From Podarcis filfolensis (taxonomy: Eukaryota): a stretch of DNA of 64,000 nt. The translations under genes and the position numbers were made by a program. How positions within the stretch are numbered: position 1 is the stretch's first letter; every line of letters begins with the position of its first letter. Under the pieces are notes generated by a model, which saw only the letters and a program-made list of their open reading frames with translations, was not told the origin of the DNA and ran no database searches. Below, in pieces: positions 17,209-46,030 of the stretch. Where the stretch lies: the NCBI GenBank assembly GCA_964270895.1, contig OZ185436.1; one strand, 5' to 3'.

Positions 17209-17286
17209 GAAAAGCTCCCCTGGATCAGAACAAAGAAAAGCTCCTCTGGATCAGAACAAAGAAAAACTCCTCTGGATCAGAACAAA
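17209..17286 (+). repeat. 26-bp unit x3 tandem repeat (GAAAAGCTCCYCTGGATCAGAACAAA)
   Basis: Three adjacent near-identical copies, no spacers. Confidence 0.92.
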
Positions 17287-20200
17287 TGCCTATCTAGTCA
17301 AGCATTCTGTTTTGTGCCATGGGCGACTAGATTCCTAAAAGGTAATAGTCCTCTCCTTTTGATGCTCTCCAGCAATGTATGAAGGCAGTAGTCCTTTTGT
17401 TTGCTCTCCAGCAACTGTTACTCAAGAGGCGTTCTGTCTTTAAACTTGAAAGCTCTGTATAGCCATCGTGACCAGTAGTGCAGGAGCACAAGTCTACAGC
17501 AAGACTGAGAAAGTCTGAGAGCCAATCCCAGAACAATTATGCCCGGAGGTTTCTTTGCATTACATCTACCATCTAATGATAGCAGCTGCAGTTTCGCCAG
17601 GTCCACGTGGGAGTTTGAGGTAGAGGAATGTGGAGCAATTCATTTAAGGCCATACATGACATCACCAGTAGCCTCAGGAATAGTTTTTTACCCATCTGGT
17701 CATCTAACCAAAGCAAAATCTCCTGCCTGGTGGGCAACACCCAACAGAAAAAAAATTCAAAGGAATTCTCACACCTTGGGCTGAGTGAGTTCACGGTGCT
17801 TACCGTGACTGGCACATAGCACATGGCTCATCAGCTGATTGTCCCTGCTCCATTTTGAACACTACTCTCCTTATGAGTGGAATAAGCCATAAAACATAGT
17901 GTCATTGCTATGAAGCCTTGTGAAGTGACTTCCCCTCTCTCTCTTTCTCCCGCTCCCTGTCAAGATAAGGCATGGATGTCACTGCCTATTTGATGTTCAT
18001 TTTGACTTCCTCTTGGCGACGATCTTGTGCCCTCCTTTATTTCTTCCCTGGCTTCTTTCAGATTCAGAAGTTTGAGGAGTCATTACAAAGGAAGTCTTAG
18101 AGTGATTTAAGCAACTAGTTTAGGGGCTCTTTGATACGAACCGGGATGCTGGGACAGAGGCAGTGTAGAAGCCTCTAGCTCGGAAGACCGAGTAGTGGGA
18201 AGGAGTCGCTATCTAACTTCCGCAATTGTTTCACTCAAACATAGCTCGGACTTGCCACAATATACTGTGCTAATGCCTCATGCAGTATGGCTGTTCTCGT
18301 GCTATACTTGGAAGCCATGTCCAGGAACATGAGAGGCAGACCAAGAAACCAGCAGATGCATCAAGCGATAGCATTTTCAAGTGGGGACCAAATAACCTTG
18401 CTAATACCTTCATCAGCCACCATGTCTTTGGTTTATTTTTCACAAAGGATCAAGATCTCTGGCATTTAGCCACCCCATGTATACAGAATGCAACAACCTT
18501 AATTTGGCCAGCAGTTATTTAATCTGAATCAAAAGGAACAAATTGCCAAAGACCTTGGCAACTGCCTGGCTTAGGTCTAACTCATGCTTGCCTGTCTTGA
18601 GTAATTCCATTGACCCAGTAAGGACCACACGCATCAGAAACACCAGGAATGAGGTCAAGGCGTCGGCTCATGTGTTATCCCATACTAATTATGTGATCGT
18701 TTCTGTCTTTTAATGTGGAGCTTTAATAACAACAGTGCTTATTTTATATAGTAACTGGTGTCACAATTTCACGTGTTGTTGGCCAAAAAAAATAATAATA
18801 AACCTCACGATATTGGCTGCTTCAATGTTGCTTGCACCACCTCCATTCGAGAACTTACTGATGGATTGCAAGATCCTCTCATGATCAGCCCAGAGCAAAG
18901 TCTGGCCCAGATAAAGCATCTGCTGTTGACAAGTGCCTCATTGTAGCTCTGCCTTTTTCTGTCCTAGTATTTCCTCACCACAATGATGTTTACATGTGAT
19001 TGCTATAGAGCTTACTGTAGAATGTACATAGCGACACACTTAGGGTGGGTAGGACTGTCCTGTCCTGTCCTGTGCTGTGCTGATGTTTTCAGAGAACAAT
19101 CGAACAGAAGAAGAAGAAAAATAAGTAACCACCCCTACAACCGTTAAGTGGAATTCTTCCATCTCCTGGCTTGGTTACAAGGGTAGATCAAAGTTCACCG
19201 CTGGCTTTGGTCAGAGAGATGGAAAATGCATCAAATTTCTGAGCATGCTGAAAGTGTTGAATGCAGCTGCAGAGGAGAAGGAAGACTCCTTCTGCTCTCC
19301 AGAAAGAGCTGCCTTCAGTGCAGATCGCTTGCAAACATGGGTTTGTATTTAATCAGTTTTTATTATTATTATTATCTCAAGTTACTTTTAAGAGGCTGGA
19401 CTTACCAATGATGTTAGAGCATGCACACGCATGCTCTTTTGAGGAGGGAAGAAGGTCCTGTAACGCACATGGCCTCTCAATCCTAGATATAGGGAGAGGT
19501 GCAATAAGTGGTCTTTGTGTTGCCTGAAGCCTATAAAAATATTTATTTTAATTTTTTGTGAGAAATTTCACTAGGACTTTATGCAATATGCACACATGTG
19601 CACAAACGCACACATGTATAGGGAAAAGGTAGTGGCGGGGCATTGAGCCCCTCTGACTGCTGCTGGGTATAGCAGCAGCAGCTGTAAATCCACCACTGTT
19701 GAATGTAGAGCCTGAGTGGTATGGTTTGAAAAGCACGGACATCTAATGCTGGTTGTGGCACACTAGTAACCTGTGGCTTATTTTAATGGCTATTGGAAGC
19801 ACAGCTGTATCAGCCACAGGGATACAAACAGTGCAAAAACCCTTGGCTATCAGAAGCTTGGAAAGTTGCTCCATATGCGATGGGAGAATTTTAGGCAGCA
19901 AGCCTGTATTCAGGGTATATTCCAAGAAGGTCCTCATAGAGCAGCAAGCTGCTGTGCTCCACATGCACTGCAAGAAGTAGTTTGAGCTGCTGCTGGTGAA
20001 AAAAACAAACCCCAAAACTCAGTTCAGAATGGCACAGGAATCGGAAGGACCACTTGGAGGTCCTAGTTCATCTCCACGAATCAGAGCAGCTGGGTGGATA
20101 CCTTTTTAACAGATCTACAGAACTTGTGGCTTGCCTAACTACCAGCCTGCCAGAGGCCTGGTCAGGGGTCAAAGTGTCTTGCAGGCCTCCGTAGATGGCT

Positions 20201-22339
20201 GGCATACTGTGATGGGCTTGGTGGGTTCCACAGTCCTGGCCTATAATACAGAATAGGCATTTTGCTCATACTGTGAGGACAGTGGTAGGGTGGCAGTCCT
20301 CCCCTGACCTCCCGCCAGCTGGGTGGCTTGCTGCTTTCAGGAGGGTTGAGGCAGTAGTGGGGGGTCAGTGTGGTGCACAAGGGAACCAGCAAAGCCATCA
20401 GCAGTTGAGTGTCACCACCACTAGTGTGTGAGGAGCTAGTTCCATGGTGCAGTCCCCACAAGGCTCACTTCCTCAGCCTGAAGCCCCTCACTTGCTGAGT
20501 TCGAAGCACAGGTTGGAGATGAAAAGGGGGAAAGGAAGTTTATTCCTTATTTAGGTTGGGGGAATTAAAATGAGCTTTACACATTGCTATAGCCATCACT
20601 GCCGCCAACATGTTTGGGCAGATTTAAACCTTGGTGCAGTTCAGCTCATTTTGATTTCCCAAGGTGGCCGCACGTTGAGGCTAAGAAGAATAGCCGAGGG
20701 TCCCCTGCCCCCATTAGCTAAAGAAGGACCTTAATTACCTTAATGGTTACTTCCTCTGCCCTGTTTAGAAAGAGCTTGGGCTCCTGTGCTTTCCGTATAC
20801 TTCTGCGAAGTCTGCCTAACTTTCTCCCATATTCTTTCTCTTAATAATATGCATAAAGCCAAGGACCCCGTACCCAAGGGGTAGGCCTAGCCATAACAAC
20901 GATTAGCAGCAGAAACAAACCAAGCCTTTGCAAGATCAGGTGAGAAACCAAATAAACAAATTAAAAGAATTCAATTTTCCAGGGTGTTTCGGAATAAGAG
21001 GGTGTGTTGAGAAAGGCAATCATGAGGGAGACATTTATTTTTTTAAATAAACAGAACTATCTCTATATTATATGTAGGGGTGTGCGTGTGGGTAAGTGTG
21101 AGTGAAAAAGAAGTCCCTCCTAACTGCTTCTTAATTAGGAAAAATACCTTAACGATAGGAATAAGTCATAAGCCATTTCCTTGCCCTTGGTCCTTTAAAT
21201 AACCATGCTTTTATGTGAAACGCAAATGGTTCCTGCTAAATTCAGCAACCAGACAAAGGAGTGAATGCAGGCATCAGAAAAAGAAGATGCGTGCAGAAGA
21301 ACTGGGTTCCCAAACGTCACTTTCATTGTCAGTCGATGGAAATGTTCATCCCACGTTCCCTCTCAGAGTGACTGTCTTGAGCTTTGCTACCTCCATGAAA
21401 CTTTCATGTCAGCTTGGTCATGTGTTTCCATGATTAGCATCCAATTTTCTCAGTAGCCCATGTCAAAAAGCCTTAGAGGAATCAGAGAGCAAGGACACTT
21501 TGATTTTCATTTGCCAGATGAAAATAGCAAGTCCTTAATCTGTAGCTGAGCATTTCCTCAATTTGTTCTTACAGCAGGGTAGTCTATTTGTGACACACTT
21601 TAGCAATATGAGCATTCAAAGCCTTCTGCTTTCCCATCAACGTTCTGCAAATAATTGTTTGTTTAGGCCTCGTTCTCATTTGTGTGCTTTTTGACAATTT
21701 CCCCTGGCATCATTTCCCCCACATCACTGATGCCCATGCATCATTTTAACGTGACTTTTGGCCCAACCATAACATTTTCATGTACGTATGATTGCAGGTA
21801 CCTCCTTGCACTTAAGGGGGCAGTGCGCCTCCTCCCCCAAAGTAACCTGGGGGCTTATGCATTTTGCATTTTATAGCTGGAAGTCTACCGTTAATAGAGA
21901 AATGCACTAGAGGTGAGCACCTATGATGCTCTAACAAATTAATGTGTTGTAGGATAGATGCTACAAAAACAAGTACACAAGCATTGCTGCATGTCATGCA
22001 GCTTAGGGACGGGATCTCTATGACTGAGGTTGTCACTAACAGTCTGCAACTGAGCTTGCCACCTGAATGCAGGTGGGGGGCTCACATGATTGAACGCATC
22101 TCTGTACGCTCCCTGCACCTGAAAAATGACCATGTCGTGGGAAAAGGTTATGTGCAGAATCTCAGTGAAAACTCGGCTATGCCCTAGTGTTAAGGAGCAA
22201 GCTATCCAATCTGGCTTGGGTGAATTTATCATGGTATCAGGCTGTCACCCTAAACTTTGTGCCAGTGAGGCAGACTAAATCAAATGCATCAGCCTTACTT
22301 GGGTTCTCTGTCCTTGGAATACATAGCACATGTCATTGA

Positions 22340-22465
22340 TGGGAGAGCCTGTGTTGTTAGATGTTATTGGGGTACAGCTCCCATAATCCATGACCATGGT
22401 TCATGCTGGCTGGGGCTGATGGGAGTTGGAGCCCAACAACATTCAAAAGGTCACAGGTTTCCCCA
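22340..22465. mobile_element. Decayed palindromic hAT-like MITE inside the PPARGC1B 3'UTR
   Basis: TGGGAGAGCCTGTG...CACAGGTTTCCCCA ends; same internal core as 11127-11262. Confidence 0.65.
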
Positions 22466-23601
22466 ATCCATTACCTAGGCTGTGATCCAATGAGCAAATG
22501 GAGCTCAAAAAAATAGAAAGAAATAAGGTTGCTCCATATTCTTATGGCAGAATTCTGTCTTTCAAAGCTTTACACAACATTGAAGAGAATGCGTAGGCCA
22601 GTTTTCACACAGTTTTATATGCAGAAAAATGCACCTGTACTACTAGATTAGCCTACTGAATTTTTGAAGGGTCAATTTACACTGAAGGTTTTTGGTCCCC
22701 GCCCCCCCCCCAAAAAAAAGTCAAAACGTTTCCCATTTCCTCATGGAGGAAACTATGTCTGATGTGGATAACAAGGCAAACCCCTGGAGAGTCTGGTTTT
22801 AATGCAGCCACTGGTGCTTTAGGTGGCATTATTTATTGGAAAAGTGAAAAAGAGTGAATTAATACCACTGTTTGCAGCGTGTGTTTATGAGTGTATGTGA
22901 GCCAGAGAGAGTGAAGGAGACTAAATTGATGCATTTCTTAAGAAAGGTGTAAGAATTTCACCTAAAAGAGGGGCACATTTGCTATGTTATTTATAATAAA
23001 AACTAGATTTTTTGTTTTTTGAAGAGGACACTGCTAATAATTAGAAGGGGCCAATTCTGCTTCTCTTTTACATGTATTAACTAAGTGATAACTTATTTCT
23101 TGGTAAGTAAAAGCAGCAGGATTGACCCCTTTTGTAATCAATAAAATCAAGTTTTTAGTTCACTGTTTTAAAAAAAATAGTAGAAGATTTTTATATTTCA
23201 CTTAATTTCCCCCCAGTTGTGTTCTGTTGTGTCCTTATTTATGTAATATACTTTAACCTTAATCGGCATAGATTCTTATGCCTTTCCTTTGTTATTGTCA
23301 TTTTTTAAAAGAAATATTTCTTTCTAGTGTGATTTCAATGTCTACCTTCTAAATGAGAGAACGTTTTCTTGTATTTTTACATTGTCAGATTCTATAGTTT
23401 CGTAGATGATTTAACCAAATTGCTCAATGTATTCTCTATATCTATCTGGTAGGTATATAAAAGTTCTATTTTAAATTGTGTAAATACTTCAGAACTGGCT
23501 TCTTTTTGAAACTCCCCTGCCGTGGAGTTACTTGTTTACATCACAAAGACTGTAGAATCTCTACATTCATGTACTGTAAATAGTGAAGTGATCTGCCTAT
23601 A

Positions 23602-23611
23602 AATAAATAAA
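23602..23611 (+). terminator. Probable distal polyadenylation signal of PPARGC1B (overlapping AATAAA x2)
   Basis: AATAAATAAA at 23602-23611, U-rich upstream, GU-rich element downstream near 23660-23690. Confidence 0.7.
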
Positions 23612-23894
23612 TCATAACAAATATACTATGAAGTCCAACACGTCCTTCTTGCTTGCAACTCTGTGTGGAATTGTGTGTACATTTTTGGGAGGCTTTCTGC
23701 TCCTAAATTGCACCCATGTCCTCTCTATGAATCAGCTGGAGTCTGGGGACCCTCACACCTATCGTAGGCCTTGTTTACAGCTATAGAAGACAGAGGTGTC
23801 TTCTGAAAGATGCCAGCTTATGGAACAGCTGTAGTCTTTGGTTTCTAATAGAGATCCAGATTAAGTGCCCCATGCAGAAGCTCTGACACTGCTT

Positions 23895-24200
23895 TGAAGA
23901 GGTCCACCTCCGAGGGCCTTCTGGTGGTTCCCTCACTGCGAGAAGTGAGGTTACAGGGAACCAGGCAGAGGGCCTTCTCGATAGTGGCACCCACCCTGTG
24001 GAATGCCCTCCAATCAGATGTCAAAGAAATAACTACATGACTTTTAGAAGACATCTGAAGGCAGCCCTGTTTAGGAAAGTTTTTAATGTTTGATTTTTTG
24101 TTGCATTATTATTATTATTATTCTGTCGGGAGCCACCCAGAGTTCCTGGGGAAACCCAGCCAGGTGGGTGGGGTATAAATAATAAATTATTATTATTATT
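23895..24200 (+). mobile_element. L2-clade LINE 3' fragment
   Basis: GTRQRAFSIVAPTLWNALQ...FRRHLKAALF-type ORF2 end, followed by gggtataaataataaa and an (ATT)n tail. Confidence 0.8.
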
Positions 24201-25448
24201 AGGATGATTTTACACTATTCACATGCTTCGTTGGCAAAGATAGCACTCTGTGACAAAAGGGGCAATGGATGCAGCATGCAACCCTTGGTTCCCCATAATA
24301 CTGTTTGGGGATCTTTCCCTTGACCCCCAAGTATTAACTGATCTCCCAAGTAACACAAGAGGCAGGGCCAGGTGTTTAAAAAACCTATCATTAATGGGGA
24401 AAGCAACAGACACCAAACACAGCTCATTTTAATTCAAAAGCGCCAAGACAACTGCTCCATCTCCAGTTGTTTCATCCTCCTCCTACCACCTCAGGGTCAT
24501 TGCTTCTCCCTGACCCAGCCATAATTCAGCAATTTGGGTTTTCTGATTAATTGCTTTCAGGTTTTTGTGGGGGAAGTGCTGCGGGGCGGGGAGTGCTTGG
24601 ACATGGACTTGGAAAGCTGGGACCTGTCTCCAGAAATGCAGAGCAAAGGTAAGTTTAGATGAGCCCAGAGTCAGGTTTCATTGCACTTATGCTTCAGTCA
24701 TGCCACAAAGCCCCAGGGGGATGGGATTGTCGCTGTACGCACACAGCCCTCAGAGCCTTGGAACTTGGTGTGTTTATTATTCTGCTAACAGGACGAAAGA
24801 GTACTTTGGAGGTGTGTGGGCATGGGAAGAAAGAGCCAATTGTTATTTGCAGAATAAAAGTGTTTGAACAGCAAGGAAAGGAAAGGAAAATGTAGCAGAA
24901 AGCTTAAGGAGACCTCTAGGTGAGTAAGTAACATTGGGTAGAAAGGAAATTGATCATTCAAATGTGCGGAATTGTATTTTGCAAGTGTCCCTATTTACCA
25001 GGACTCTCTTTATGTTCTGGTCCCTGCCCTTATTTGCGATTGTGAGAGATGTTTTCAGAAATGCCGTTCATGTGCAAAAATCCTCATTTCAGACCCCTCT
25101 GCTCTCTAGGCATTAAAGACCAGAATCAAATACTTTGGTGTGCTAGCAGAAGCCAGCATAAGGACTCTTGCTTGAACAGCAGGGTGCCCCTGCACACCTC
25201 TGCTCCACTTCCAAATCCTTGGAGACTGGCAAATATATTGCAGCGATGTGCAGAAAGGAGTAGCCCATTAAGGCTGCTGGTTATTACCCGTGGCAAACAA
25301 AGCCATTCTAAGTACTGTATAGGTTTTGCATGTGGACAGGATGGAGCCAGGAAGTGAACACTAGCACATACTCAAAACAAGCTTGAATTGGGAGAAGAAG
25401 GAAGGAAGTAAAGCCTGAAAGGAAGGGATCCATGGCAGAGAGACAGCA

Positions 25449-26009
25449 ATGGAATTTGAAACAACCACCTGCTGGAACATGGTGACACACAGCATACATG
25501 GCCGTCCTGTGTCCCTGAGCTGGGGCTGCAGGAGTTCTCTTAGGACTCTGCCCAGGGCATACCGAACACAGTGCAGGAGTCCAAAGCCAGCACCTCCTAC
25601 CCTGTGTTCAAGGTTCATGCCAGGTTGTCAACAGACAGCTGCCAGTTCTTCACTGCCTCCTCAGAAGGAAAAGCCTCCTTGGAAACTCACAGAAAGGAGA
25701 ATCATGATTCCCTGCGATTTCTGCCTAGGGAAACCTCACTCAGCGGAGAAGAAGTGTCTGACCTGTGAGGCGTCCCTGTGCCGGGACCACCTGAGGAAAC
25801 ACAATTCGAAGGCCACCCAGAAGAACCATGCCTTGGTGGCTCTTGGGACTGCTGGGGCCCAGGAGGAGAAGAAATGCCCAGAGCATGCCATGCTGCTGGA
25901 ATGCTTCTGTCAAGACGACTTGGCGTGCGTTTGCAAGACCTGCTCCACCACCGGCTCCCACAGCAGCCACAACGTCGTCGCCCTGAAGGACGAGTACGAC
26001 AAGCAGATG
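25449..26009 (+). CDS. TRIM-like gene, first coding exon: B-box1 + B-box2, no intact RING; start codon uncertain (25449 or 25704)
   Basis: CDFC-x10-CLTC-x4-C-x2-H-x3-H-x8-H (B-box1) and CPEH-x7-C-x2-D-x4-C-x2-C-x5-H-x2-H (B-box2); ends KQM|gtaagg, phase 0. TRIM16/25/29/47-like arrangement. Confidence 0.88.
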
Positions 26010-26282
26010 GTAAGGGGCTTCAACCAGGCATGGAGCGTTCCAAAGAGGTCCTCCAATTAAATGTAACAGAGAGAGATGTTTTAAATAGAAACGGGTGTCA
26101 GAATGTGGAAGTAAAGAAAGGGATCCTGCAAGACTTTGAAACAAATAGTATTGGGGGGAGAAAACGAAGCAAAAAACATCAAGCATCAAGTAGCATTCAA
26201 AGCCTGATAAATAAGGAGTAGCAAATTATACGTGGGGTGTTTTTCTAATGGTGAGGCATGTATTTATACAAATATGTAGTCA

Positions 26283-26340
26283 GGGGAAGGGCTGTAGCTC
26301 ACTGTGGTAGAGCATGCGCTTTTCACCCAGAAGGTCCCAT
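26283..26340 (+). mobile_element. tRNA-Ala-derived SINE head, truncated
   Basis: GGGGAAGGGCTGTAGCTCACTGTGGTAGAGCATGCGCTTTTCACCCAGAAGGTCCC has an A-box and anticodon-arm resemblance but no T-arm or acceptor stem. Confidence 0.6.
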
Positions 26341-26840
26341 TGAACTGAGAAATGACACCAAACCAACAGTGGAGACTACCTATAGACCTTGCTTAGCCTC
26401 AGCACTTTCTGCAGGTATCTTCATTTCCGTGCTTGACAATGTGTTTGTGCATTACAGTTCCTGGCATTGATCATTGACTTTTTCTCCCCCTCTGAGCATG
26501 GCACTGTGCCAGCCAAGATTAACAAACCCTCCACTGCATGTTAACAGCCCTTCCCAGGGAATATCTTATCAACAGCCCCTGCTAGATTAGAGGACAATTT
26601 TGCAAAAAAGTTAGTGGTAACTAATGCTATTGCTTTCAATTTATGGCCTTCTGTAAGAACCTGCAGCCTGCTTCTAGAAGAACAAGTTTGCTCTTTGCTT
26701 GTTGTTTGCCGCCCTAGGCTCCTTCAGGAGGAAGGGCAGGAGATAAATTACATAAAAAATTACAAAATTACATAAAAAATAAAAGTCCTGCTGAGGCTAG
26801 TGGGACTTTGACCAGGATATGGGGACAGAAAAGCCTTGGA

Positions 26841-27514
26841 TCCATGCGACGGTCACCTCCAGACTGGATTATTGTAACTCGCTCTACGTGGGGCTGCCCT
26901 TGAGACTGACCCAGAAACTCCAGCAGGTGCAGAATGCCGCGGCGAGACTCCTTACGGGGTCTTCACTGTGAGATCACATTCATCCGGTGCTATACCAGCT
27001 GCACTGGCTCCCGGTGGAGTACAGGATCAGGTTTAAGGTGCTGGTTTTAACCTTCAAAGCCCTATACGGCCTAGGACCCTCGTACCTACGGGATCGCCTC
27101 TCCTGGTATGCCCCACAGAGGAACTTACGGTCTTCAAATAAAAACATCTTGAAGGTCCCAGGCTACAGAGAGATTAGGCTGGCCTCAACTAGAGCCAGGG
27201 CTTTTTCGGCTGTGGCTCCAACCTGGTGGAACGATCTGTCACAAGAGCCAAGGGCCCTGCGGGACTTGACATCTTTCCGCAGGGCCTGCAAGACAGAGCT
27301 GTTCCACCAGGCCTTTGGTCAGGGTGCAGCCTGACTCCCTCCTTTGGCAATCTTTATAGAACTTTAGTTTATGGTTGCCATCAATTTTGATTTTAATTAA
27401 TTTTTATAATGTTTTTATAATGTTGCACTATTTTAGTGTTGTTAGCCGCCCTGAGCCCGGCTTCGGCTGGGGAGGGCGGGATATAAATAAAATTTATTAT
27501 TATTATTTATTATT
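26841..27514 (+). mobile_element. L2-clade LINE, 5'-truncated, well preserved
   Basis: TSRLDYCNSLYVGLP...LHWLPVEYRIRFKVLVLTFKAL...RAFSAVAPTWWNDL...CKTELFHQAF plus a 3'UTR and TTA-rich tail. Confidence 0.92.
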
Positions 27515-27734
27515 GGAACATTTCTGTGTACTTGATTGCATGCTTGATTGTGCTTTAAATCATTAGGAGTCTAGCTACTTGGGAAGAAGACCCAACATAT
27601 TTGAAAAGACAAATAAAGCAGAAATTCACCATCATGGCAGCCCAAACATACAAATGGAGTTCAATGGGGTTTATTTCCAAGTCAATGAGCAATCCATTCT
27701 CAAACTGCAACCACAAGCATCCTTGCCAGGATGT

Positions 27735-28312
27735 ATGGCAGCCACCTGAGAGTTCTCAAAGAACTCAAATGTGAAATTGCTGGTCTTCAAAACAGAAATA
27801 TGTCCCTCGGATCAGCCTCCATACCAGAAGACTGGGAAGTAGCTAATGCAACGGCAGTTTTAAAAAAGGAATTGGGGGGGGGGGTCCTGGAAATTACAGG
27901 CCAGTTAGCATAACGTCAGTCTCTGGAAAGCTGGTGAAAAGTATTGTTAAAGATGAACTAACCAAGCACATAAAAGAACAAGCCCTGCTGAAGCAGAGCT
28001 AGCATGGCTTCTGCAAGGGAAAATCCTGTCTCACAAATCCATGAGGGTGTCAACAAGAGTGTCAGCAAGCATATAGACAAAGGTGATCTGGTTGACATAG
28101 CATACCTGGACTTTCTAAAAATGTTTGACGAAGTATCTCACCAAAGACTCCTGAGTAAGCTTAGCAGTCAAGAAATAAGAGGAGAAGTCCTCTTGTGGAT
28201 CAGGAATTGGTTAAGTTGCAAGAAGCAAAGAATAGGAATAAATGGACAGTTCTCCAAATGGAAAGAAGTAGAAAGTAGAGTCCCCCACGGATCGGAATTG
28301 GAACCTCTGCTA
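27735..28312 (+). mobile_element. CR1 LINE ORF2 (reverse transcriptase) internal fragment, frameshifted
   Basis: RVLKEL, IPEDWEVANA, PGNYRPVS, QHGFCKGKSCLTN, DIAYLDF, RLLSKL, WIRNWL, QRIGING motifs. Confidence 0.92.
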
Positions 28313-28388
28313 TAGTTGATTAATCTACCAAATAAACTTATTGAAATGTACAGTTCTGTGATTTCCCTTCTGTTTTTCTCTTAATCAG

Positions 28389-28484
28389 GCAATTCTCTCA
28401 CGGATTATGAAATCAATGCAGGAATACAAAACTGCCACAAAGAAGACACTCTTACAGCTTCAGAAAAGTGAGGATCAGATAAAG
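28389..28484 (+). CDS. TRIM-like gene, coiled-coil exon (96 bp)
   Basis: Pyrimidine tract plus aatcag|, |gtttgt donor; open, phase 0-0; AILSRIMKSMQEYKTATKKTLLQLQKSEDQIK. 96 bp is the canonical TRIM exon size. Confidence 0.85.
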
Positions 28485-28660
28485 GTTTGTGCTGTAACTT
28501 CATGATGCCATGCATCACTCTCAGGTCCCAGGTGGAAAATAATGAATGTGTCTCCAATATGCTTCTCCATCCAGCAGCCCAATCTTTTCATTTTAACTAT
28601 GCAGCACTTTTGGCCAGTGACTCTTTTCACCCGAAGGTTTATTATCTGACCATCTACAGT

Positions 28661-28667
28661 CTCTATC

Positions 28668-28710
<43 letters not shown>

Positions 28711-28716
28711 ATCTCT
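28661..28716 (+). repeat. (TCTA)n microsatellite
   Basis: Seen directly. Confidence 0.93.
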
Positions 28717-29054
28717 ATCACACATGGACACAGATTTAGTTAGTGCATGCTCTATTTACTGTCTGGACAGGCGTGTGTTTCTACACCCTCTTCAGATACT
28801 TAACCTCAGAAGGACTGGGTTTTTTAAAAATGGCAACTCTAGTGCGTGTGTATGTGCACTTTCAGTAGTTTACCAGGGACAAGTACCCAAAAACATGGGC
28901 TCTCCCTGGTTAAGAGTGTGTGACCACTAACAGACACTAGGGGGCTTCCAAGGCAGCACTTCATATCACAGACCCACGCAGAGCTGGTCTGAGGCCTGGG
29001 GTGGGAGTCTTGTTAGAATAAAGTTAAAAACTCAAGCAGAAAAGCAGCTGGGCC

Positions 29055-29255
29055 CATTGGCGGAGCTTCATGCTCCGGCACCGGGGGGGGCAGAGGGCAG
29101 GCGGAGGCGGGGCTGGCATGTGTCCGGGGGGCGTGGCACGCTGCCTGCAGTGGTGTGGTGCCCAGCATGGGCAGGGGCAGCCGCGATGGCACCCCACCAG
29201 GATCACGCTGCCAGGGGCAGTGCGCTCCCCCCACACTCCTCTTCCTCCGCCAGTG
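29055..29255. mobile_element. GC-rich non-autonomous DNA element
   Basis: Inverted ends CATTGGCGGAG ... CTCCGCCAGTG (10/11 match). Confidence 0.6.
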
Positions 29256-30115
29256 GCTGGGCTAGCTTAGCTCTCCAAGGCCCAGGACAAGGGCTACCCC
29301 CTGCCTCTGCACAGCCCTGCATATCAGGCAACCTTTTCTGCCACAACAGAAGACTGGTGAGATGTGAGCCTCTGGTACTACTTTGGTGCATGTGCTTCAG
29401 TTGCTGGGAAACCAGGAGGGCATGAGAAAAAGAGCACCCAATGGTAAGGAAGCCAAAGTCAAGCCAGGGAACAGGCAAGAGATCCCAGCCAAGGCACAAG
29501 GATTCAGTGAAAGGGGGCAGTGGGTGAACCATCACAACTGAACCAGAACTCCCAGCAGCACCAGACAGCAGAGATAGGCTAACTGAGGCTGATGACACCA
29601 GGTTGGGGGAGGTTGTATTAGGATCTGGGAATTAAAAAGCTCTGTTGACATTCAAGCTACAGTCCTACGCACACTTATATGGGACTTACTCTTGAGTATA
29701 TATGCATAAGTTTGCACTGCACATTACTCAGTGGTGGTAGCCACAGGATAGCTGAGGCAAGAATACTTTGGTGTGACCTTCTGAGGGGCTGATGCCCACA
29801 GTGCTTTTCAGAGCGACTGGCAACATACTTGGGAGGTTGCTGAGAGCTATAAACTTGATAGCTTGGTGGCCTGTTTTGCGGAAGCAATATGTCATTTTTC
29901 ACTATAAAAATGTTATCTGACATATATAGTCTCCACACCTTTTAAAATAATGGTTGTTTCCTAAGGGAGTTTTATGAACAGGGGAGGGACTGTGACCACG
30001 GAGCTAACAATCCTTTTTAGCCTAGATAGGGAAATCTTGCTCAAGACACCCCGGGTTTATGCCCTAAGTCCAACAATTCAATTGTAATAAAAAGTTGCCA
30101 TCTTTCTTTCCTTAG

Positions 30116-30349
30116 AACAATAAGAAAACGTTGACAGATCAGCTCTCCAGAATCTTCCAAGAGATCAAGTCTCAGGTAGATCAGAAGGAGAAGCAGATCC
30201 TAGGTGACATCCAGTCCAATGAGAAAAAGCAGCTGGCTGACATGGCAGCTCTGAAGAAGCAAGTGGCAGACAAGAGGGACGTGGCCGCCCAGGGCCTTCG
30301 GGAGCTACAAGCACTAACAGAGAAAACAGATGCTTGCCTCTTCCTCAAG
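30116..30349 (+). CDS. TRIM-like gene, coiled-coil exon (234 bp)
   Basis: ccttag| ... |gtgagc; phase 0-0; heptad-rich NNKKTLTDQLSRIFQEIKSQVDQKEKQILGDIQSNE...DACLFLK. 231/234 bp is canonical for TRIMs. Confidence 0.92.
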
Positions 30350-30453
30350 GTGAGCAGCTTTTTCTCCCCTCCAAGTTAGCAAAGTCTCATTTGCTGGATG
30401 CCCCCCTTTCTCTGCGTGCAATAAAAACAATTTCTTTTTTTTGCTTTCTGTAG

Positions 30454-30476
30454 GATTTTCAGCTAGCCCAAGAGAG
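30454..30476 (+). CDS. TRIM-like gene, 23-bp exon
   Basis: Strong tract plus tgtag|, |gtaagt donor; phase 0-2; DFQLAQER. A 23-bp exon after the coiled coil is canonical for TRIMs. Confidence 0.85.
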
Positions 30477-31401
30477 GTAAGTTGCACATCACACATTCCC
30501 CTTTGTTTGCCTGTCCCATAGACTACACTGCTCTCCACATGTACGTGGTTTCATATGGTGGTCCACTGAATGGACTCACTGCCAGGTAATGAGAAGCTTG
30601 GCATGATGGGAGTCTTTTCTCTTCCTCCTACATCTTCTGAAAGTATTAGCTTTCCTACCTTCAGGAATGTGCTTTGCCTCTTCAGTAGCAATAACGGGAC
30701 CATTTTGGATAATTGTGCTAATGATATGTGGCATCTAGTTCCTAGATTAATGGTAAAGGAACTCAAGAGTGGCTGGTGAGAGCCGTGTGGTTGAGCTGGA
30801 GCAACCAGTTCAAGCCTCTTCACACTTCTCATGTAGGGGAGGGGGACAATAGGCTTAATTACCTATTTCCTCCCAAGGTAAGGAAAATGACATAACTAAG
30901 CTTACTCTGTGGTATTAACCCCTTCATGCATTAATTGGACAAGCACGTTGGGTATATGAGTCTGGTTAACCCACACCTCACTCTCAGAAGACGGAATGGG
31001 GACTGATTCAGACGGTTCCCATTCCTTTTCTGTGGTGTCTGGAAACTATGGGGCAAAAGCCTCATCCAAGTCAGTGCTTGATCTTTCCCTACCCCCAATC
31101 TCCGCACCCTGTCATCTCTGCCCCATCCTGGTTGGCATTAGAAGGCCCCTGACAGGAGAAATCAGCAAAAATATCCTCCCCACTTCTTCCATTAGTGGAC
31201 AACTCTGCCAAAACAGACCCCTTCCTGTGAGTGCAAGGGCACCATTGGAATTTCACTCAAAAGCAACGACATACACAACCTCTTCTATCCATAGGTTAAC
31301 TTAGTATTTACCCCTAGGAGTGACAGACATTGCAATCAGGGGTGATGTTTGGTAGGTTGTTTGGTTGCATGGTTGGTTGAATGACCTCTTGTACATGCTA
31401 G

Positions 31402-31538
31402 GATTAAGAAACAGAATTTCAGCAATGACAGTGTGGAAGTGCTGACAGTGCATCTGGATCAGTCAGACATTCAGGATGTCAGAAGTCACACAGCCATGTA
31501 TATCTCCAACCTAGACGCCCTGATGCAAGTAGTACATG
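31402..31538 (+). CDS. TRIM-like gene, linker-helix exon (137 bp)
   Basis: gctag| ... |gtaagt; phase 2-1, open; IKKQNFSNDSVEVLTVHLDQSDIQDVRSHTAMYISNLDALMQVVH. Confidence 0.75.
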
Positions 31539-32627
31539 GTAAGTGAACGTACCAAAGAACACCTCCCCCAGCAGTGTTAAGTAAGCTATATAAGTTACAG
31601 TGAATATGCTGATATGTGAGTAATAACTAGAGATTATGCACTTTGATATATGTGCACAAGCAGTATGCACATTCTCCTGCTAGATACACATCTGCTATAT
31701 ATAGCAACTTGAATTACCCTATTTCCATGCTGCACATTTTTCATTGACTTGATTATAGGGCATAGTCTAATTTCATCTGTTTACTCAAAGATACAAAATA
31801 TAATATACCGGTAGGTTAAATAACCTTTACAATCTATCTAAAAAGATTTTGATGATCGGTCACAGCAGTATAACAACTACGGGACTCGTGGGACAGATTT
31901 TCTTTACCTTGTTTGTTTTTGGATATTTTATCCCTTCCAAATGTTTGGTGATGCAGAATCCCTATTAGACATTTCATTTATCCTCATAGCTGACTGCATG
32001 TGAAGGTTCTGTCTGCTGGTATGTGGGTGAGGTCCTGGGCTGGTGTGGAGCTATTTAACTGCTAAGGGACAGAGACTATTAGACACTCCTGCCACCACCT
32101 TTATGGGACTAAACCTAGCTATTATTAACCACACAAACTGGAAATATTAAGACATAGGTGAGTGCTAGAGAATTATCTTCTCAAAGGAGTCAGCCTCACT
32201 TTTTCTCCAGGACCTTATGGCAAACTCTCCAAAAGCAAACAGCTTCACTCAAATGTCTGCTTCAGATTTCACACTTCTCTGGATTTTGCAGTACTGTTCT
32301 TGGCTCAAACATGTACCAAAATGCATTTAGGACACCTGTTTCAGAATAAGATACATATAGAAATACATTCACTGAGATAAAATACTCATTTTGTGATAAA
32401 ATACTATTTAATTATGTATTTAAATTATTTAACTCTGTATTTAATAATTATGTACTGGGTTTAAATATGCATTTAAATTCAAACTTTAGAGTGGAGTTTT
32501 AAAAACATATTCACATATTAATTTAGAAATGACTCAGAACAAACTTGTGAATGAACACATGCAAAATCATGGACCAGAAACAGACTGATCCATCCCTTAA
32601 TGGTGTGTGCTGTTGGATTCCTTAAAG

Positions 32628-32748
32628 CAGAGGTAGGCAACGTGATGCCAGTACAGTTCCCATCTGCCCATCCCACACTGCCAGTGACCAGGGATGGTGG
32701 AAATTGTAACCCAAGAACAACTCAAGGGCACCATGTTGGCTACCCCTG
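32628..32748. mobile_element. hAT-like MITE
   Basis: TIRs CAGAGGTAGGCAAC...GTTGGCTACCCCTG; 8-bp flanks ccttaaag and ctttaaag (7/8 match) fit a hAT target-site duplication. Confidence 0.75.
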
Positions 32749-33010
32749 CTTTAAAGCAAGGAGAACATCCAAGTCTTACCTGCCTTGAGCTTGCATCTTC
32801 TTCTGGTGTTATGATTCATTACCTTGTTCTGAATGTAATTTCGCAAATGACATGCTGAATCACACCTACGGGATCTCTTGAGGCGGTTTGCTTCCGAAAC
32901 CTCATCATGCCAAATCTGTCCTGGAAATGGGTCTTGCAGAAACAGTTCCTGATTACAAGAGTGGTTTTGCATGAATCAGCTGTCTTGTCCTGTTTTCTTA
33001 CTCTTCATAG

Positions 33011-33041
33011 GTAAAATCATTAGCCAAACACAGTGGAGCAG
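33011..33041 (+). CDS. TRIM-like gene, 31-bp exon
   Basis: ctcttcatag| ... |gtaaat; phase 1-2 fits its neighbours; GKIISQTQWSR. Confidence 0.6.
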
Positions 33042-34090
33042 GTAAATCCCTTTTTGTCTTTCAGTCTGTTCCTCACATCCAGCACTGGGTTTTCCTTTCA
33101 TTTGTGCTTCAGTTTAGGAAATGAACAGCACAGGAATTAATACTTCAGATGAATGTCATGGGTTCCCCATACCTTTCTTCACAAAAGAAGAACCTAGTTG
33201 ATTATTTCCTGATAAAACACATGAAGAAGGATCACAAAGCACAGTGCAATCCACATATTAAAAAAAAAGAGACCAAGAGTGGGACAGGATTCCTGCAATT
33301 CATGTAACTCTATTTAGTGTTGAAATAAGCTTAGACACTAGCCGAGCCAGTCCAAGACATTTTTGCACCTGAGACAAGCTGCAAAATGGTGCCTCCTTCC
33401 CTGTCAGGGAAGAAGGGCTGAGTGAAGATCTACACCAGGAACAAGGAGTGAAGAAATGCTGCTTAGGTGTGATTTGCATGATCTGTGTACACAGTGTGTA
33501 TCATGCCTACATACACGTGCAGGCTTCTTTATGTATGTTATTCTGTCCACATGGACACTGGGCTCATGCAGAGGGTGCAACCCCCCCAGCCCATTGACCA
33601 AGAATGACAACAGCTTTGTGTGAACCACCTCTGTTGAAATGCATTGTGTTTTAAGTCGATGCTGCAATGCTGTTGAATTCAATGGGACATATGTCTAGAG
33701 CAACACTTTGCTTAGCAAAGAGGTGAATAATGTGTGTTGTAGGGGTATGAAAATTGCATTTTGCATGTGGGCAGGTTACGTTGCCCCTTTAAAGCAATTT
33801 TTAAAGCCTTTTTAAAATCTGAATTAAGTCAGCAGAATGCCCTTTTCACAAGATATATGCAATGAGATGGTAAAAAGCTATAATCAAAGTGCAATGAAAT
33901 CCTATGCATTCTACTTAGAAGTCAATCTCATTTAACTCAATGGGACTTACTCTCAGGTAAGTGCAGAAAGCGTTGCAGGTGTAGTGTTACAATTTCTAGG
34001 ATGTTTTCCCATCTTTGTGTGACTTTTCATTTGCTGCTTCCTCTTACGTTTTTCTTTCAATTGATACCCATTATTCTCTTTTCTCACAAG

Positions 34091-34122
34091 GACAATCCCA
34101 GCTGCTGAGTTCTCGCTTGATG
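34091..34122 (+). CDS. TRIM-like gene, 32-bp exon
   Basis: Long pyrimidine tract plus acaag|, |gtaggt donor; phase 2-1; TIPAAEFSLD. Confidence 0.6.
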
Positions 34123-34674
34123 GTAGGTGTTTGAAACATCACTACTAATTTTCAAGATGCCAGTCTATGTCACCTCACCTTCTCCAAAATTATGCTGCCA
34201 ACACCTTATAAAATGTAGTTCAGACCATGAATACTGTGTGATGATAGAGCAGGTAGGAAACTTATTAAATGGGGGATGCAATTGTTTCAAAACCAGTAGC
34301 AAACTGTAGACCTACCTACAATTTTATAAAAGCATTTGCAGCTATTCATATTGAAGCAAATATGCCTGCTTTTTCTGTCTCTTCCAAAAATTCCATGACG
34401 TACTGCAGCTTTGAAATGTGCTCATGGCTCTTATACCAAACTTCATGCAAAGTTACTTTTAGAGTTACACCAGACAAGGCAGATACACTCCTAGTATTCT
34501 AATATTATGGAACATTTACAATGATAGAATAAATGTAACACTTACTTGAATTAAATGAGAAGTGTATTTTATCAGGCTAGGTGTGAATAGCTGTACATGG
34601 AAGGGTTTATGACGTTCATTGTCCTCTGCTAATGATAAGCACGTTCAACTAGCTGTTCCTTTTGTTTCAATCAG

Positions 34675-34743
34675 ATGTGATTTGCAAAGTCTTCCCATCA
34701 CCACCACCACCACTGACCAGGGATATATCTGGAGAAAACGCAG
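34675..34743 (+). CDS. TRIM-like gene, 69-bp proline-rich exon
   Basis: tcaatcag| ... |gtaagc; phase 1-1; DVICKVFPSPPPPLTRDISGENA. Confidence 0.62.
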
Positions 34744-34969
34744 GTAAGCAAAACAGAATAAACCATGAACTATGAACAACTGACCACTGAATTGTCTGTC
34801 CAAGGTCCCCACTATTTCAATGTTTTGACAACTTTTTAGTGATAAAAATCTCAAGGAACAATATTTTCAAAGTTGTAGGCTGCAACCTACAAAAACTAGC
34901 TTATGCTGGTACTGTCTGCCCTGCAGATACTTGGAATCACAGCTTTGTCTCCTTTTGTGTCTCCTAAAG

Positions 34970-35007
34970 TGATCTTTATGAATTACTTCCAGCTGGAATG
35001 TAGCTAG
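34970..35007 (+). CDS. TRIM-like gene, candidate final coding segment (VIFMNYFQLECS-stop)
   Basis: Strong pyrimidine tract plus taaag|; phase 1 entry reaches TAG at 35005-35007, giving ~406 aa in total. An alternative acceptor at 35125 gives EISQWSTNCLLPTLAVAGY-stop. The true end is unresolved. Confidence 0.4.
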
Positions 35008-37199
35008 ATCTGGTGAAGTTGTTTATCTTGTTTAGAGCACCATGCAGGGCCCTTTCAAAGGTTTGTCCAAGTTAGGACTCCAAACTTTCTCTCATTACCA
35101 TAAAATTAAATCTGCTTCTGTTCAGAAATTAGCCAGTGGTCCACCAACTGCCTTCTGCCCACTCTGGCAGTAGCAGGTTACTGATGCCTGTCATTATGAG
35201 CTGAAGACTTGGCTTAGAAGAGAGAAGAAAAACGTGGAAAGTTCTGGGCTTGGATTTTTTAAAAGTGTTGATAATGAGCAGCTAGAAAAGATGATGATGA
35301 TGATAGCAGCAGCCTTTCTTCCTCTTCTAAAGGTGCAGACGTTCAGAAATGATGAAACTAAGAAACAAGAACTCACCCAGGTTCACTGGCTATAGAAACA
35401 CGAAGATACAAAACAGGAGGAATGCTTTGGAGCTGTCTGGTGGAACTGAGTTGCAAAAGAAACCTAGTGGGATTTGATAATGTCTCAGTTCAGAAAAAGC
35501 ACTCTATGGGTGCTCATTTAGGTAGAGTAGGCCCACTCTACCTGCTGGCTTTAGTGTTTGAAGGGGGGCGGGATCTGTTTGATAGTTTTTTGTGAGTGAC
35601 TTGGGAAATGCCTGGACTACTTTTGTTTCCCATTCCCTGTATTTTGATATGTGTAATAATAATGGAACTACAAAATGTTGAACAAAACATATAAGCAGCC
35701 AATCAAAATCCTTTGTGCCGTCCTGTCAAAACATTTTCTTTGAAGGGCTCCAAACTCTGTTATCATGTGCTGTACAACTCCCCTTAGATTCTGTTTTGCA
35801 GCCCTCTTGGTAAGCAATTGTTTGTATTGAGTATAGTTGTGTTAATTTGTTTTACAGCATGAAAAGCTAAAAGTGCTGGGTGATTCTTTTTGCTTTTATT
35901 GTTCGCTTGAAGCAAATCAAATGGAATCCATTGCCTTGCAAACATAACTCCTGCATAATTAAGCCAATCTCTGGTGATGGAAATAAAGCTTGGGTGGTGA
36001 TTAGCATAGCATTAAGTCCTTTGAAGGAGAAGATGTGTATTGCTGATCTGCTGGATTCACATTTAGCTCCCTGCAGTTTAAAATATGCTCTGTTGACTTC
36101 TGATGTGCTTTTTCTGCATTGGCTTCCCATTCCCATCAAAACAGAACCCCTCCCAGATCACTGGATATGCAGATCTGCCACTCTCCTCCATTCAGAAGTA
36201 AAAGGGGGCACCTTCTGGGAGTGGAAACTCTGGAAGATCTTAGGAATTTCTGTGTCCACAGCAAGTCACTGTGCTGGGGGTTTCAGAACAGGGTTCTTGG
36301 GGACAGAACGGTTTGGTGTCCTCTGAAGACCTCCCAATATGAAACACTTTCTAAGCATATGGTTGATGGTCCTTGTCTGTCAGAGTTTTTAAAAAATGTT
36401 CCATTAAAATTGACTGATATGGCCATTTCAATTTAGAGGGCTGGTTAGACTGTGATTGCAAAAGTGCCCTAATGAAAACAAGTGCTGAAAGTATGTACAT
36501 GGTGAACAATCTGTGAATAAAAGCCCCAGTGAACAAATCCTAACAAGTCTTAAATCCTTAAAGGGAGGAAGGGGGTGGGGAATGTTGCTGGAGAAATGTG
36601 ATACTTAAAATCAGCAGAACCTCGTGGTCAGTGAATAGGTGGAGCAAGGAGCCTATGTTTCTGTGGTGAATAAACATCCTTCAAGAAGAACTAATATTTT
36701 AAGCATTTCATCTCATCCCTTCATATGCATGAGTTCCCTTATGCATGTAGCCAGCTGGAAAGCTCCTGTTTCCTATTTCCACAAACTACATGTATGCCAA
36801 GAGGTTTACAGGGTCCAGAGATCTAGCTGAACTGTACCCTGAGCTAAGCACTACCTGTGCCATGAACCTCACTATCAGTTCCTTGCTTGGCTTGCACTTT
36901 CCTTATCATCTTTTGAGGACATATACTGGATTCTTGCCCAGGGCTTCTGCTGCTGCAGTTGTGATACTGAACTCCCGCACACATGGCATTTGAGACCTAA
37001 GATCCACACCAAGATGAAAAACAGTTGGGGAGATCAGCACAGTAAAGGAAAACAAAAAAGCAGGTCAGTCAATATTTCTATTCAGCTCTGGCCTCTACCT
37101 GCAGTAGAAACAGGAAGCACAAGCAACTCCTGAATACCTTCTTTGTTTTTGGAGCTTTGTTTCTCCTATGCTGGAGATCTTCAGCCAACAACAACAAAA

Positions 37200-45299: not shown

Positions 45300-46030
45300 G
45301 GGAGGCTGAAGGCACTCAAAGAAATTCAGTTTTACTTTTCATCCAAAGTTGACAGTACTTCCGCGCCTCCCGTCCCCACCGCCGTGTCAAAAGACCACGG
45401 AGGCCGCCGCCGCCTCCGCGTCTTCTTGCTTCCCGCCCGGACAGGGAGAGAGCCTCCCTGCTCAGGTTTCTCAGCAGGCGGGCCGAGGCGGGCGTCACAA
45501 GAGGCCTGACCGGAGCCTTGGGCCGCTCTCTGCAAGGTCGCTGAGCTGGCGGCCAAGGGGGGCGGCGGCCTCGCAGGGCGCGGGCGGGACCTCCCTCCCT
45601 CTCTCCTCCTCCTCCTTCCCCGGGCCGCTCGCTGGCAGGAACTCCGAGCAAGTCCCGCCGCCGCTTCTTGGAAGCGAGGAGGCCGCCGCGAGAGTCGCGC
45701 GCCGCCGCCGCCGCGAGCCGAGCTGAGCTTGAGGCTCCCGCGTGGAGAGGAGCGCAGAGAGAGGAAAGGCAGCTGGAGGGGGCGGAAGAAGAGCGCTCTT
45801 GAAGCTTGTGCGTTTCTCCTCGGAGGGTATCTCGGTTGGGAAGGGGCGGTCTGGAGTGGGGCAGCAGGAGGAAACTCGGGGGTCGTGTCTTCTTGCTTGA
45901 AAGGAGCTTCTTGCGCATCCACAGCCCATCCTCTCCTCGGGCTGAGTTTGGTGAGGGTCTTCTGAGCACTTTTGGGAGGCTTGGGAGTAAGATAGCCTGC
46001 TGCCTCGTCTTCTTCGCTTCGCTTCATATT
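45300..46030 (+). promoter_or_regulatory. SLC26A2: CpG island: probable promoter and non-coding first exon of SLC26A2
   Basis: The only extended CpG-dense region in the window, with several GGGCGG boxes and GCC repeats, ~6.8 kb upstream of the SLC26A2 ATG exon. Mammalian SLC26A2 has an untranslated exon 1. Exon limits not determined. Confidence 0.75.

Follow-up and report, generated by a model that had tools for sequence, protein, structure and literature searches.

A maintained TRIM gene of lizards at the former PDE6A site, probably a ligase-dead adaptor with a decayed RING

The window examined in this study, a 64-kb stretch of genomic DNA from the lizard Podarcis filfolensis, carries three genes on the + strand, in the order PPARGC1B-like gene, TRIM gene and sulfate transporter gene. 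Our analyses of the TRIM gene indicate that it is a real, spliced and maintained member of a sauropsid family whose RING decayed in squamates, and that its product is, on balance, probably a ligase-dead coiled-coil adaptor. The gene is an orthologue of RING-bearing "TRIM25-like" genes of turtles and birds. It occupies the PPARGC1B–SLC26A2 interval from which PDE6A was lost in sauropsids. An initial annotation of this DNA, made from the letters alone, had already placed the gene in the PDE6A slot, in agreement with the reported loss of PDE6A from sauropsids (Lagman et al., PMC4906994).

Results

Structure and splicing of the TRIM gene

The TRIM gene consists of nine GT-AG exons, running from 25449 or 25704 to 35352 (Table 1). 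All splice sites are canonical, and the joined frame is open over 400 codons when read from the ATG at 25449, or over 315 codons from the ATG at 25704. Exon 1 encodes B-box1 (25713-25829), a linker and B-box2 (25875-25970), and is followed by a donor GT at 26010. The five downstream exons were added by tblastn of lizard orthologues together with splice-site inspection. The joined coding sequence was built for the frame check, the selection analysis and the tree, while searches used single exons or, as a stand-in, the 97% identical Podarcis muralis protein P0272. When exon 8 is read through, a stop is encountered at 34773-34775; this stop is bypassed by splicing in the P. muralis and Rhineura models. 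By exact threading, the exon sizes in P. muralis are 561/96/234/23/137/31/32/69/20 bp, and the series 96/234/23/137/31/32 is common to Rhineura, Eublepharis and two birds. The 96-bp exon was found in six other sauropsid loci and the 234-bp exon in all threaded orthologues; the 31-bp exon is kept in squamates and in the two bird genes of ~425 aa, and is not present in the crocodile.

The initial annotation had read intact B-box1 and B-box2 and a 96/234/23-bp exon series with consistent phases from this DNA, and Pfam matches, zinc ligands, AG/GT flanks and the splice junctions described below all bear that reading out. The boundaries that it gave (25432-35007) had to be replaced, because the ATG at 25432 is out of frame and opens an upstream open reading frame (ORF) of 17 codons, and because 35007 lies outside the coding sequence, which ends at 35352. 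There are two in-frame start candidates, 25449 and 25704. The Met at 25704 is present in all squamate orthologues aligned and serves as the start in most other squamate models; translation most likely starts at this codon, directly before B-box1. The region 25449-25703 would be either an N-terminal extension of 85 codons or 5' untranslated region (UTR). At the other end of the gene, the first AATAAA past the stop is at 35982, within a non-coding block (35579-36096) that is 78% identical to Phrynosoma, and the 3'UTR of the TRIM gene probably extends to that signal.

Transcription was examined in contigs from four small runs of ~100 million letters each; no run is labelled RNA, and RNA status was inferred from GT-AG splicing at a depth of ~20. 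In run X1, a spliced contig of 873 nt (depth 19.5) covers 25686-26009 and exons 2-5 plus 55 further letters. Its junctions (26009>28389, 28484>30116, 30349>30454 and 30476>31402) fall, with GT..AG, exactly at the predicted sites, so that the joints of exons 1-5, which the initial annotation had left to spliced reads, are confirmed in a close relative. Over the exon 5 region this contig shows no differences in 143 nt. Runs X5 and X8, from separate studies, contain the joints 28484>30116 and 26009>28389. In exon 1 the contigs differ by ~3% from the window and share the two amino-acid changes of P. muralis; their source is therefore P. muralis or a close relative rather than the species of the window.

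The TRIM gene is under purifying selection

The ratio of nonsynonymous to synonymous change (dN/dS) was calculated by the Nei-Gojobori method over residues 86-400, comparing the window product with P. muralis, Rhineura and Eublepharis; Phrynosoma was left out since its protein did not thread exactly. When compared with P. muralis, dN/dS was 0.13 (7 nonsynonymous and 14 synonymous changes; dS 0.07, dN 0.009; P = 9e-6), and the ratio was 0.22 against Rhineura (P = 9e-11) and 0.26 against Eublepharis (P = 8e-13). The tightest constraint was found in the coiled coil and in exons 5-7, where dN/dS was 0-0.2 (0-0.19 for exons 5-7 jointly). The gene has been under purifying selection since geckos split from other squamates. 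The initial annotation had proposed a maintained gene, and the intact nine-exon ORF, the spliced contigs of a close relative and the dN/dS of 0.13-0.26 all support that proposal.

Constraint on the gene as a whole has been accompanied by lineage-specific erosion of the B-boxes. In geckos B-box1 is destroyed, its ligands having been replaced and five residues deleted. In iguanians it is B-box2 that is destroyed, through loss of the first Cys and deletion of the C-x2-C…H-x2-H part. Deletions of 2 residues in B-box2 are found in Rhineura and in skink-like sequences; lacertids keep both B-boxes. The coiled coil and the C-terminal motif, described below, are conserved in every complete squamate orthologue examined.

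Domains and predicted structure

HMMER searches, which the initial annotation had proposed as a check, found zf-B_box above the cutoff, a B-box1 profile just under its own cutoff and TRIM_CC, and found neither RING nor PRY/SPRY. For B-box2, zf-B_box (PF00643) scored 33.1 bits (cutoff 24.1) in the open frame 25449-26060, and the zinc ligands are complete (C-x2-H-x7-C-x7-C-x2-C-x5-H-x2-H). B-box1 matched the ANCHR-like profile PF22586 at 25.9 bits, just below the cutoff of 27; 8/8 of its zinc ligands are present, and it aligns to B-box1 of TRIM25 and MID1. TRIM_CC reached 28.8 bits with exon 3 by itself and 30.7 bits (cutoff 30) with P. muralis P0272. Exon 1, the 85-aa upstream ORF and P0272 all lack a Pfam match to RING.

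An AlphaFold2 model of the P. muralis protein (41 aligned sequences; mean pLDDT 76) comprises two B-boxes, helices at 94-203, 207-223 and 240-277, and a tail that is disordered from residue 278 and contains the C-terminal motif. In Foldseek the model matched the B-box/coiled-coil structures of TRIM5alpha, TRIM72 and TRIM28, with a TM-score for TRIM5alpha of 0.42/0.65. By sequence, phmmer against the PDB ranked TRIM25 first (E = 2e-10 over the B-boxes and coiled coil), and the best PDB match of exon 1 was TRIM25 residues 103-181. The C-terminal motif is a segment of ~30 residues (roughly 'IINQTQW…IPAAEFSLDDV.CEVFPSPP') that is nearly invariant from geckos to lacertids; it has no counterpart in birds, and turtles share only the first few residues.

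Orthologues, synteny and phylogeny

When the B-box exon was used as the query of an exhaustive profile-free search, 1367 relatives were found. Those with the highest identity were lizard predictions without a RING and "TRIM25-like" proteins with a RING from birds and a crocodile. P. muralis P0272 ("TRIM29-like", 400 aa) differs from the window product at 12/400 residues (97% identity), which identifies the DNA as that of a lacertid. A word search with the Phrynosoma protein recovered RING-less, SPRY-less orthologues in Sceloporus, Anolis, Rhineura, Podarcis, Eublepharis, Paroedura, Gekko, Heteronotia, Hemicordylus and Lerista, so that annotated RING-less orthologues are available from geckos, iguanians, an amphisbaenian, a skink, a lacertid and a cordylid. 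Most of them are named "TRIM29-like" by NCBI. No snake orthologue was among the matches listed in one word search, which may reflect loss or a limit of the search. No close squamate paralogue with a RING came up when the lizard protein was the query of a word search.

In a maximum-likelihood tree the sauropsid family was supported at 98/97 and contained two clades. Crocodilians and the bird genes of ~540 aa formed one clade (88/85), and turtles, squamates and the bird genes of ~425 aa formed the other (97/96). Squamates formed a single group (100/100) subtended by a long stem and branched in the order of the species tree. The nearest outgroups found were frog tandem arrays and a RING-B-box protein of cartilaginous fish.

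The gene lies between PPARGC1B and SLC26A2 on the same strand, as in the sauropsid PPARGC1B-linked TRIM family to which avian TRIM210/211 belong; Campbell et al. 2023 gave the names TRIM210 and TRIM211 to two adjacent chicken genes without mammalian orthologues (PMC10445537). Synteny in other sauropsids, a check also suggested at the outset, was traced in part. Collinearity between Phrynosoma and the window extends from the PPARGC1B 3'UTR across every TRIM exon, and in the pigeon Caloenas a TRIM pair adjoins SLC26A2, in the order TRIM (539 aa), TRIM (425 aa), SLC26A2. The 10-kb flanks of the crocodile locus, however, reached no neighbouring gene by tblastn or blastn, and the turtle locus contained no other called gene. 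Synteny outside squamates thus rests on one bird locus and the literature.

The RING decayed in place, and B30.2 was absent from the start

Among archelosaur relatives, all 120 listed had RING matches except two predicted turtle RING-less isoforms, and PRY/SPRY was found in 0/120. No RING, PRY or SPRY match in Pfam was obtained for the squamate orthologues listed. A tblastn search of the whole 64 kb with 282 relatives, including PRY/SPRY-bearing ones, matched known exons only and revealed no B30.2 or other TRIM-like exon. Given that neither archelosaur nor squamate orthologues carry PRY/SPRY, the absence of B30.2 is ancestral to the sauropsid family, whereas the loss of the RING is squamate-specific. 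The initial annotation had described a RING-less, SPRY-less gene that appears to keep only the oligomerisation core. The Pfam and tblastn results agree with it that there is no functional RING and no B30.2 exon; to this is added that the lack of B30.2 is ancestral and that the RING has decayed with its fossil still visible. It had also considered that an upstream RING exon or a downstream B30.2 exon might have been missed, and neither was found. An upstream RING exon spliced into the AG at 25663-25664 was ruled out by X5 and X8 contigs that are collinear with the genome across that site.

To locate RING remains, a profile hidden Markov model (HMM) was built from the N-termini of 68 archelosaur orthologues and compared with the 330 nt that precede the B-box1 Met, translated in three frames. 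Eublepharis scored 38.6 bits and Phrynosoma 27.7 bits, in both cases out of the B-box frame and interrupted by stops; Rhineura scored 9.9 bits. The remains keep a 'PVSLS' core, and the last zinc ligand has changed from Cys to Phe in 4/4 squamate fossils, while the other ligands have been lost in a nested, lineage-specific pattern. The common Cys to Phe change together with the nested later losses points to a single inactivation that predates the divergence of geckos, after which the remains decayed independently.

The reading frame of the B-boxes happens to be open upstream as far as the ATG at 25449 in lacertids, and the NCBI P. muralis model makes use of it; in Rhineura it is interrupted by a stop. 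For the most part this stretch is read in a different frame from the ancestral RING, and it gives no Pfam match. Between the two lacertids this 85-codon ORF shows 5 nonsynonymous and 3 synonymous changes, which is not different from neutral expectation (P = 0.27).

Of the two turtle exceptions mentioned above, both "isoform X2" predictions (P0257 and P0260), each begins within the last part of the RING, which is therefore not functional, whereas their sister isoforms keep it. A RING-less product may have existed before the squamate RING loss.

Discussion

The course of events that we favor begins with an ancestral gene of the turtle/bird type, encoding a RING, B-box1, B-box2, a coiled coil and a short tail, without B30.2. 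In the squamate ancestor the RING was inactivated, and the RING-coding DNA then decayed in place within exon 1. The protein that is left consists of tandem B-boxes, a coiled-coil helix of ~110 residues, two more helices and a disordered tail with the squamate-specific motif. Judging from the known behavior of TRIM coiled coils, it would form antiparallel dimers and act non-catalytically, perhaps as a self-associating adaptor that presents the conserved tail motif to a partner. B-box1 having been destroyed in geckos and B-box2 in iguanians, both would be accessory parts that add higher-order assembly where they survive.

Several observations weigh against this reading. The RING HMM barely detects the window itself, with only 2.4 and 1.7 bits split over two frames, and when the 93-aa upstream translation was compared by BLASTP with crocodile and gecko-like N-termini, neither match reached significance (E = 0.37 and 0.67). 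Given this weak signal, the case for a RING fossil in the window is built on its position, the profile matches in other squamates and a weak split match. The ORF from the ATG at 25449 could add 85 residues to the protein. The runs that contain the spliced contigs carry the label 'RNA?' and come from a ~97% identical relative rather than from the species of the window. In the lacertid lineage the B-boxes are intact and constrained (3 nonsynonymous and 5 synonymous changes, P = 0.013) and could therefore be of importance in these lizards. Finally, a RING-less TRIM, TRIM16, is reported to have E3 activity (PMC3357404), which makes "ligase-dead" a probable rather than a proven description.

This last point leads to a rival explanation, namely that the lizard protein is still an E3 ligase in which the tandem B-boxes stand in for the lost RING, as reported for TRIM16, which ubiquitinates without a RING (PMC3357404). 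Both lizard B-boxes do have complete ligand sets and are constrained relative to P. muralis. However, geckos have no B-box1 and iguanians no B-box2, and the rest of the gene is still selected in them; activity based on the B-boxes therefore cannot be the common squamate function, and we regard this explanation as unlikely. Alternatively, in line with the idea of the initial annotation, the protein might be a dominant-negative or modulating partner whose coiled coil heterodimerizes with that of an antiviral TRIM possessing both RING and SPRY, TRIM25 for example. TRIM25 is its closest solved relative by sequence (E = 2e-10), and the turtle isoforms P0257 and P0260 suggest that RING-less and full-length forms coexisted. 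Against such a role stand the low identity to TRIM25, the failure of the word search to find a close RING-bearing squamate paralogue, and the established fact that TRIM coiled coils mostly homodimerize. A simple motif scan, moreover, found no interferon-stimulated response element (ISRE) or gamma-activated sequence (GAS) in the 2 kb upstream (23.6-25.7 kb), which leaves interferon inducibility without sequence support. TRIM16 does heterodimerize with other TRIMs (PMC3357404), and yet the role of a dominant-negative partner seems to us improbable.

A transcribed pseudogene on its way to being lost, kept in RNA by read-through from PPARGC1B, would account for the stepwise loss of domains, first the RING and then the B-boxes by lineage. 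It would also fit the gap of only 1.8 kb to the PPARGC1B poly(A) signal, the absence of a snake orthologue from the matches listed, and the state of the locus in the duck, whose copy is a pseudogene that has been annotated as lying within the 3'UTR of PPARGC1B (PMC10445537). The lizard data speak strongly against it. The nine-exon ORF is intact in the window lizard, P. muralis, Rhineura and Eublepharis, and full-length orthologue models are listed for other squamates. Nonsynonymous changes are significantly below neutral expectation, splicing is exact, and a 30-residue tail motif conserved from gecko to lacertid would not be expected of a pseudogene. We thus consider a decaying pseudogene very improbable.

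A bolder form of the adaptor reading can also be put forward tentatively, as a possibility that we would not yet back. It holds that, at the base of the squamates, an E3 ligase was turned into a ligase-dead coiled-coil adaptor and the new disordered C-terminal motif became fixed simultaneously, that either B-box has since been dispensable in one lineage or another, and that the selected function resides in the coiled coil and motif only, for example as a decoy or regulator of an undescribed signaling complex.

The nearest known system is the avian TRIM210/TRIM211 pair (NCBI "E3 ubiquitin/ISG15 ligase TRIM25-like"), which shares with the lizard gene the PPARGC1B–SLC26A2 interval, the 96/234/23/137/31/32 exons, the family in the tree and the lack of B30.2. 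The avian and turtle proteins have an intact RING, whereas the squamate gene has only a RING fossil, and the squamate tail motif is absent in birds. PMC10445537 does not appear to apply the names TRIM210 and TRIM211 consistently: the duck "TRIM211" fragment printed there reads, by eye, like the bird clade of ~540 aa, and a 539-aa swan-goose protein of that same clade is listed in its table as TRIM210. Because the tables and the printed sequence conflict, the name for the ~425-aa clade, to which the lizard gene belongs, has been left unassigned. The "lizard TRIM211" of that paper is a TRIM47-like accession, a different gene from the one at this locus.

The NCBI name of the lizard gene should not be taken as orthology to TRIM29. 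Mammalian TRIM29 (ATDC) has B-box1, B-box2 and a coiled coil without RING or B30.2 (PMC8720877), and the lizard gene has this same architecture, that of a RING-less class C-V TRIM. It differs in that it nests, in a tree without TRIM29, within a sauropsid-only family whose other members bear a RING. TRIM29 also has a different chromosomal neighborhood. In phmmer, TRIM25 (2e-10) was a better match than the TRIM29 B-box (6e-6), the TRIM29 entry being a single B-box domain only. TRIM25 is likewise the best solved-structure match over both B-boxes and the coiled coil. The RING and PRY/SPRY domain of TRIM25 bind E2 enzymes and substrates; both are absent from the lizard gene. The locus differs as well, as TRIM25 sits in a TRIM25/47/65 cluster (PMC10445537). 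TRIM16 is RING-less and has two B-boxes and a coiled coil that homo- and heterodimerizes (PMC3357404). The lizard gene resembles it in these respects; it differs in the B30.2, which TRIM16 keeps and of which the 64 kb contain none.

Much about this gene was already known, and RING-less TRIMs are a known kind. The initial annotation had named a well-described conserved orthologue as a finding that would count against its reading, and the gene is indeed not an unnoticed one: NCBI already predicts a "TRIM29-like" gene in about ten squamate genomes, and the avian relatives TRIM210/TRIM211 were described and named in 2023. The present analysis adds a corrected nine-exon model, shows that the gene is orthologous to genes of turtles and birds that bear a RING and lie where PDE6A once lay, and brings to light the remains of the RING, the erosion of either B-box in particular lineages and the conserved tail motif. 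Rather than a new type of system, the locus is a dated, synteny-anchored natural experiment in how TRIM domains are lost. Since the RING works in turtles and birds and survives only as a fossil in every lizard examined, the orthologues form matched active and inactive sets for biochemistry, and the constrained coiled coil and tail motif point to the parts that carry the selected function. In addition, the avian TRIM210/211 locus is extended to squamates, and database names are corrected.

Feature coordinates and neighboring genes

Table 1. Exons of the TRIM gene and adjoining features in the 64-kb window of P. filfolensis.
Feature	Coordinates	Strand	Evidence
Poly(A) signal and end of conserved PPARGC1B 3'UTR	23602..23635	+	AATAAA at 23602; Phrynosoma-conserved block (89% identity) stops at 23635
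Decayed RING-coding part of exon 1	25425..25703	+	Archelosaur N-terminus HMM; split over two frames, stop in ancestral frame
Conserved coding part of exon 1 (Met, B-box1, linker, B-box2)	25704..26009	+	Pfam; zinc-ligand alignment; junction 26009>28389 in X1 and X8 contigs
Exon 2, 96 bp, start of coiled coil	28389..28484	+	AG/GT flanks; phase 0, open; junctions in X1 and X5 contigs
Exon 3, 234 bp, coiled coil	30116..30349	+	TRIM_CC 28.8 bits; X1 contig junctions
Exon 4, 23 bp	30454..30476	+	X1 junctions 30349>30454 and 30476>31402; AG/GT flanks, in phase
Exon 5, 137 bp, third predicted helix (after the long coiled-coil helix)	31402..31538	+	tblastn to lizard orthologues; X1 contig; AlphaFold2 helix 240-277
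Exon 6, 31 bp	33011..33041	+	AG/GT flanks; matches P. muralis and Rhineura proteins; outside read coverage
Exon 7, 32 bp, start of squamate-specific C-terminal motif	34091..34122	+	Orthologue mapping; splice sites; alignment
Exon 8, 69 bp, remaining motif and proline-rich tail	34675..34743	+	Orthologue mapping; donor GT at 34744
Exon 9, 20 bp, last five codons and TGA (35350-35352)	35333..35352	+	Orthologue mapping; splice-site inspection

The window contains no runs of N. The exons of the upstream PPARGC1B-like gene lie at 7.7-14.8 kb and include an RRM exon (Pfam RRM_1); the name PPARGC1B is based on the reading of the initial annotation, the RRM exon and the avian literature. The TRIM gene begins ~1.8 kb past the poly(A) signal of this gene, the distance estimated at the outset. 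The long 3'UTR of the upstream gene (17252-23907) is 96% identical to P. muralis, and its conservation is unusually high: within 18916-23635, three blocks are 66-89% identical to the iguanian Phrynosoma, and the best of them (89%) exceeds every TRIM exon block.

Downstream, the sulfate transporter gene at 52.8-56.0 kb has Pfam matches to Sulfate_transp and STAS. A CpG island at 45000-46000 (GC 0.53-0.67, CpG observed/expected ~0.8), ~7 kb upstream of the first coding exon of the transporter, is probably the promoter or a 5' exon of SLC26A2. No CpG island was found at the TRIM gene (observed/expected 0.15-0.39). The two lacertids differ in the immediate 5' flank of the TRIM gene: in P. muralis, ~1.7 kb of additional DNA (L005 8238-9978, at the equivalent of ~25367-25426 in the window) directly precedes the first in-frame ATG, so that the TRIM promoter or transcription start must either tolerate this DNA or lie downstream of it.

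Intron 1 contains a repeat of ~670 bp (26840-27512), the translation of which ('LDYCNSLY…') resembles the tail of a common squamate short or long interspersed element (SINE/LINE). Contig depths over the repeat were in the thousands in all four runs, and a related copy is located at ~23.85-24.1 kb. The repeat is missing from P. muralis at this site, where the alignment jumps from 26840 to 27512; it is either a private insertion in the lineage of the window or a deletion in P. muralis. Over the whole locus, introns included, identity to P. muralis is ~94-97%.

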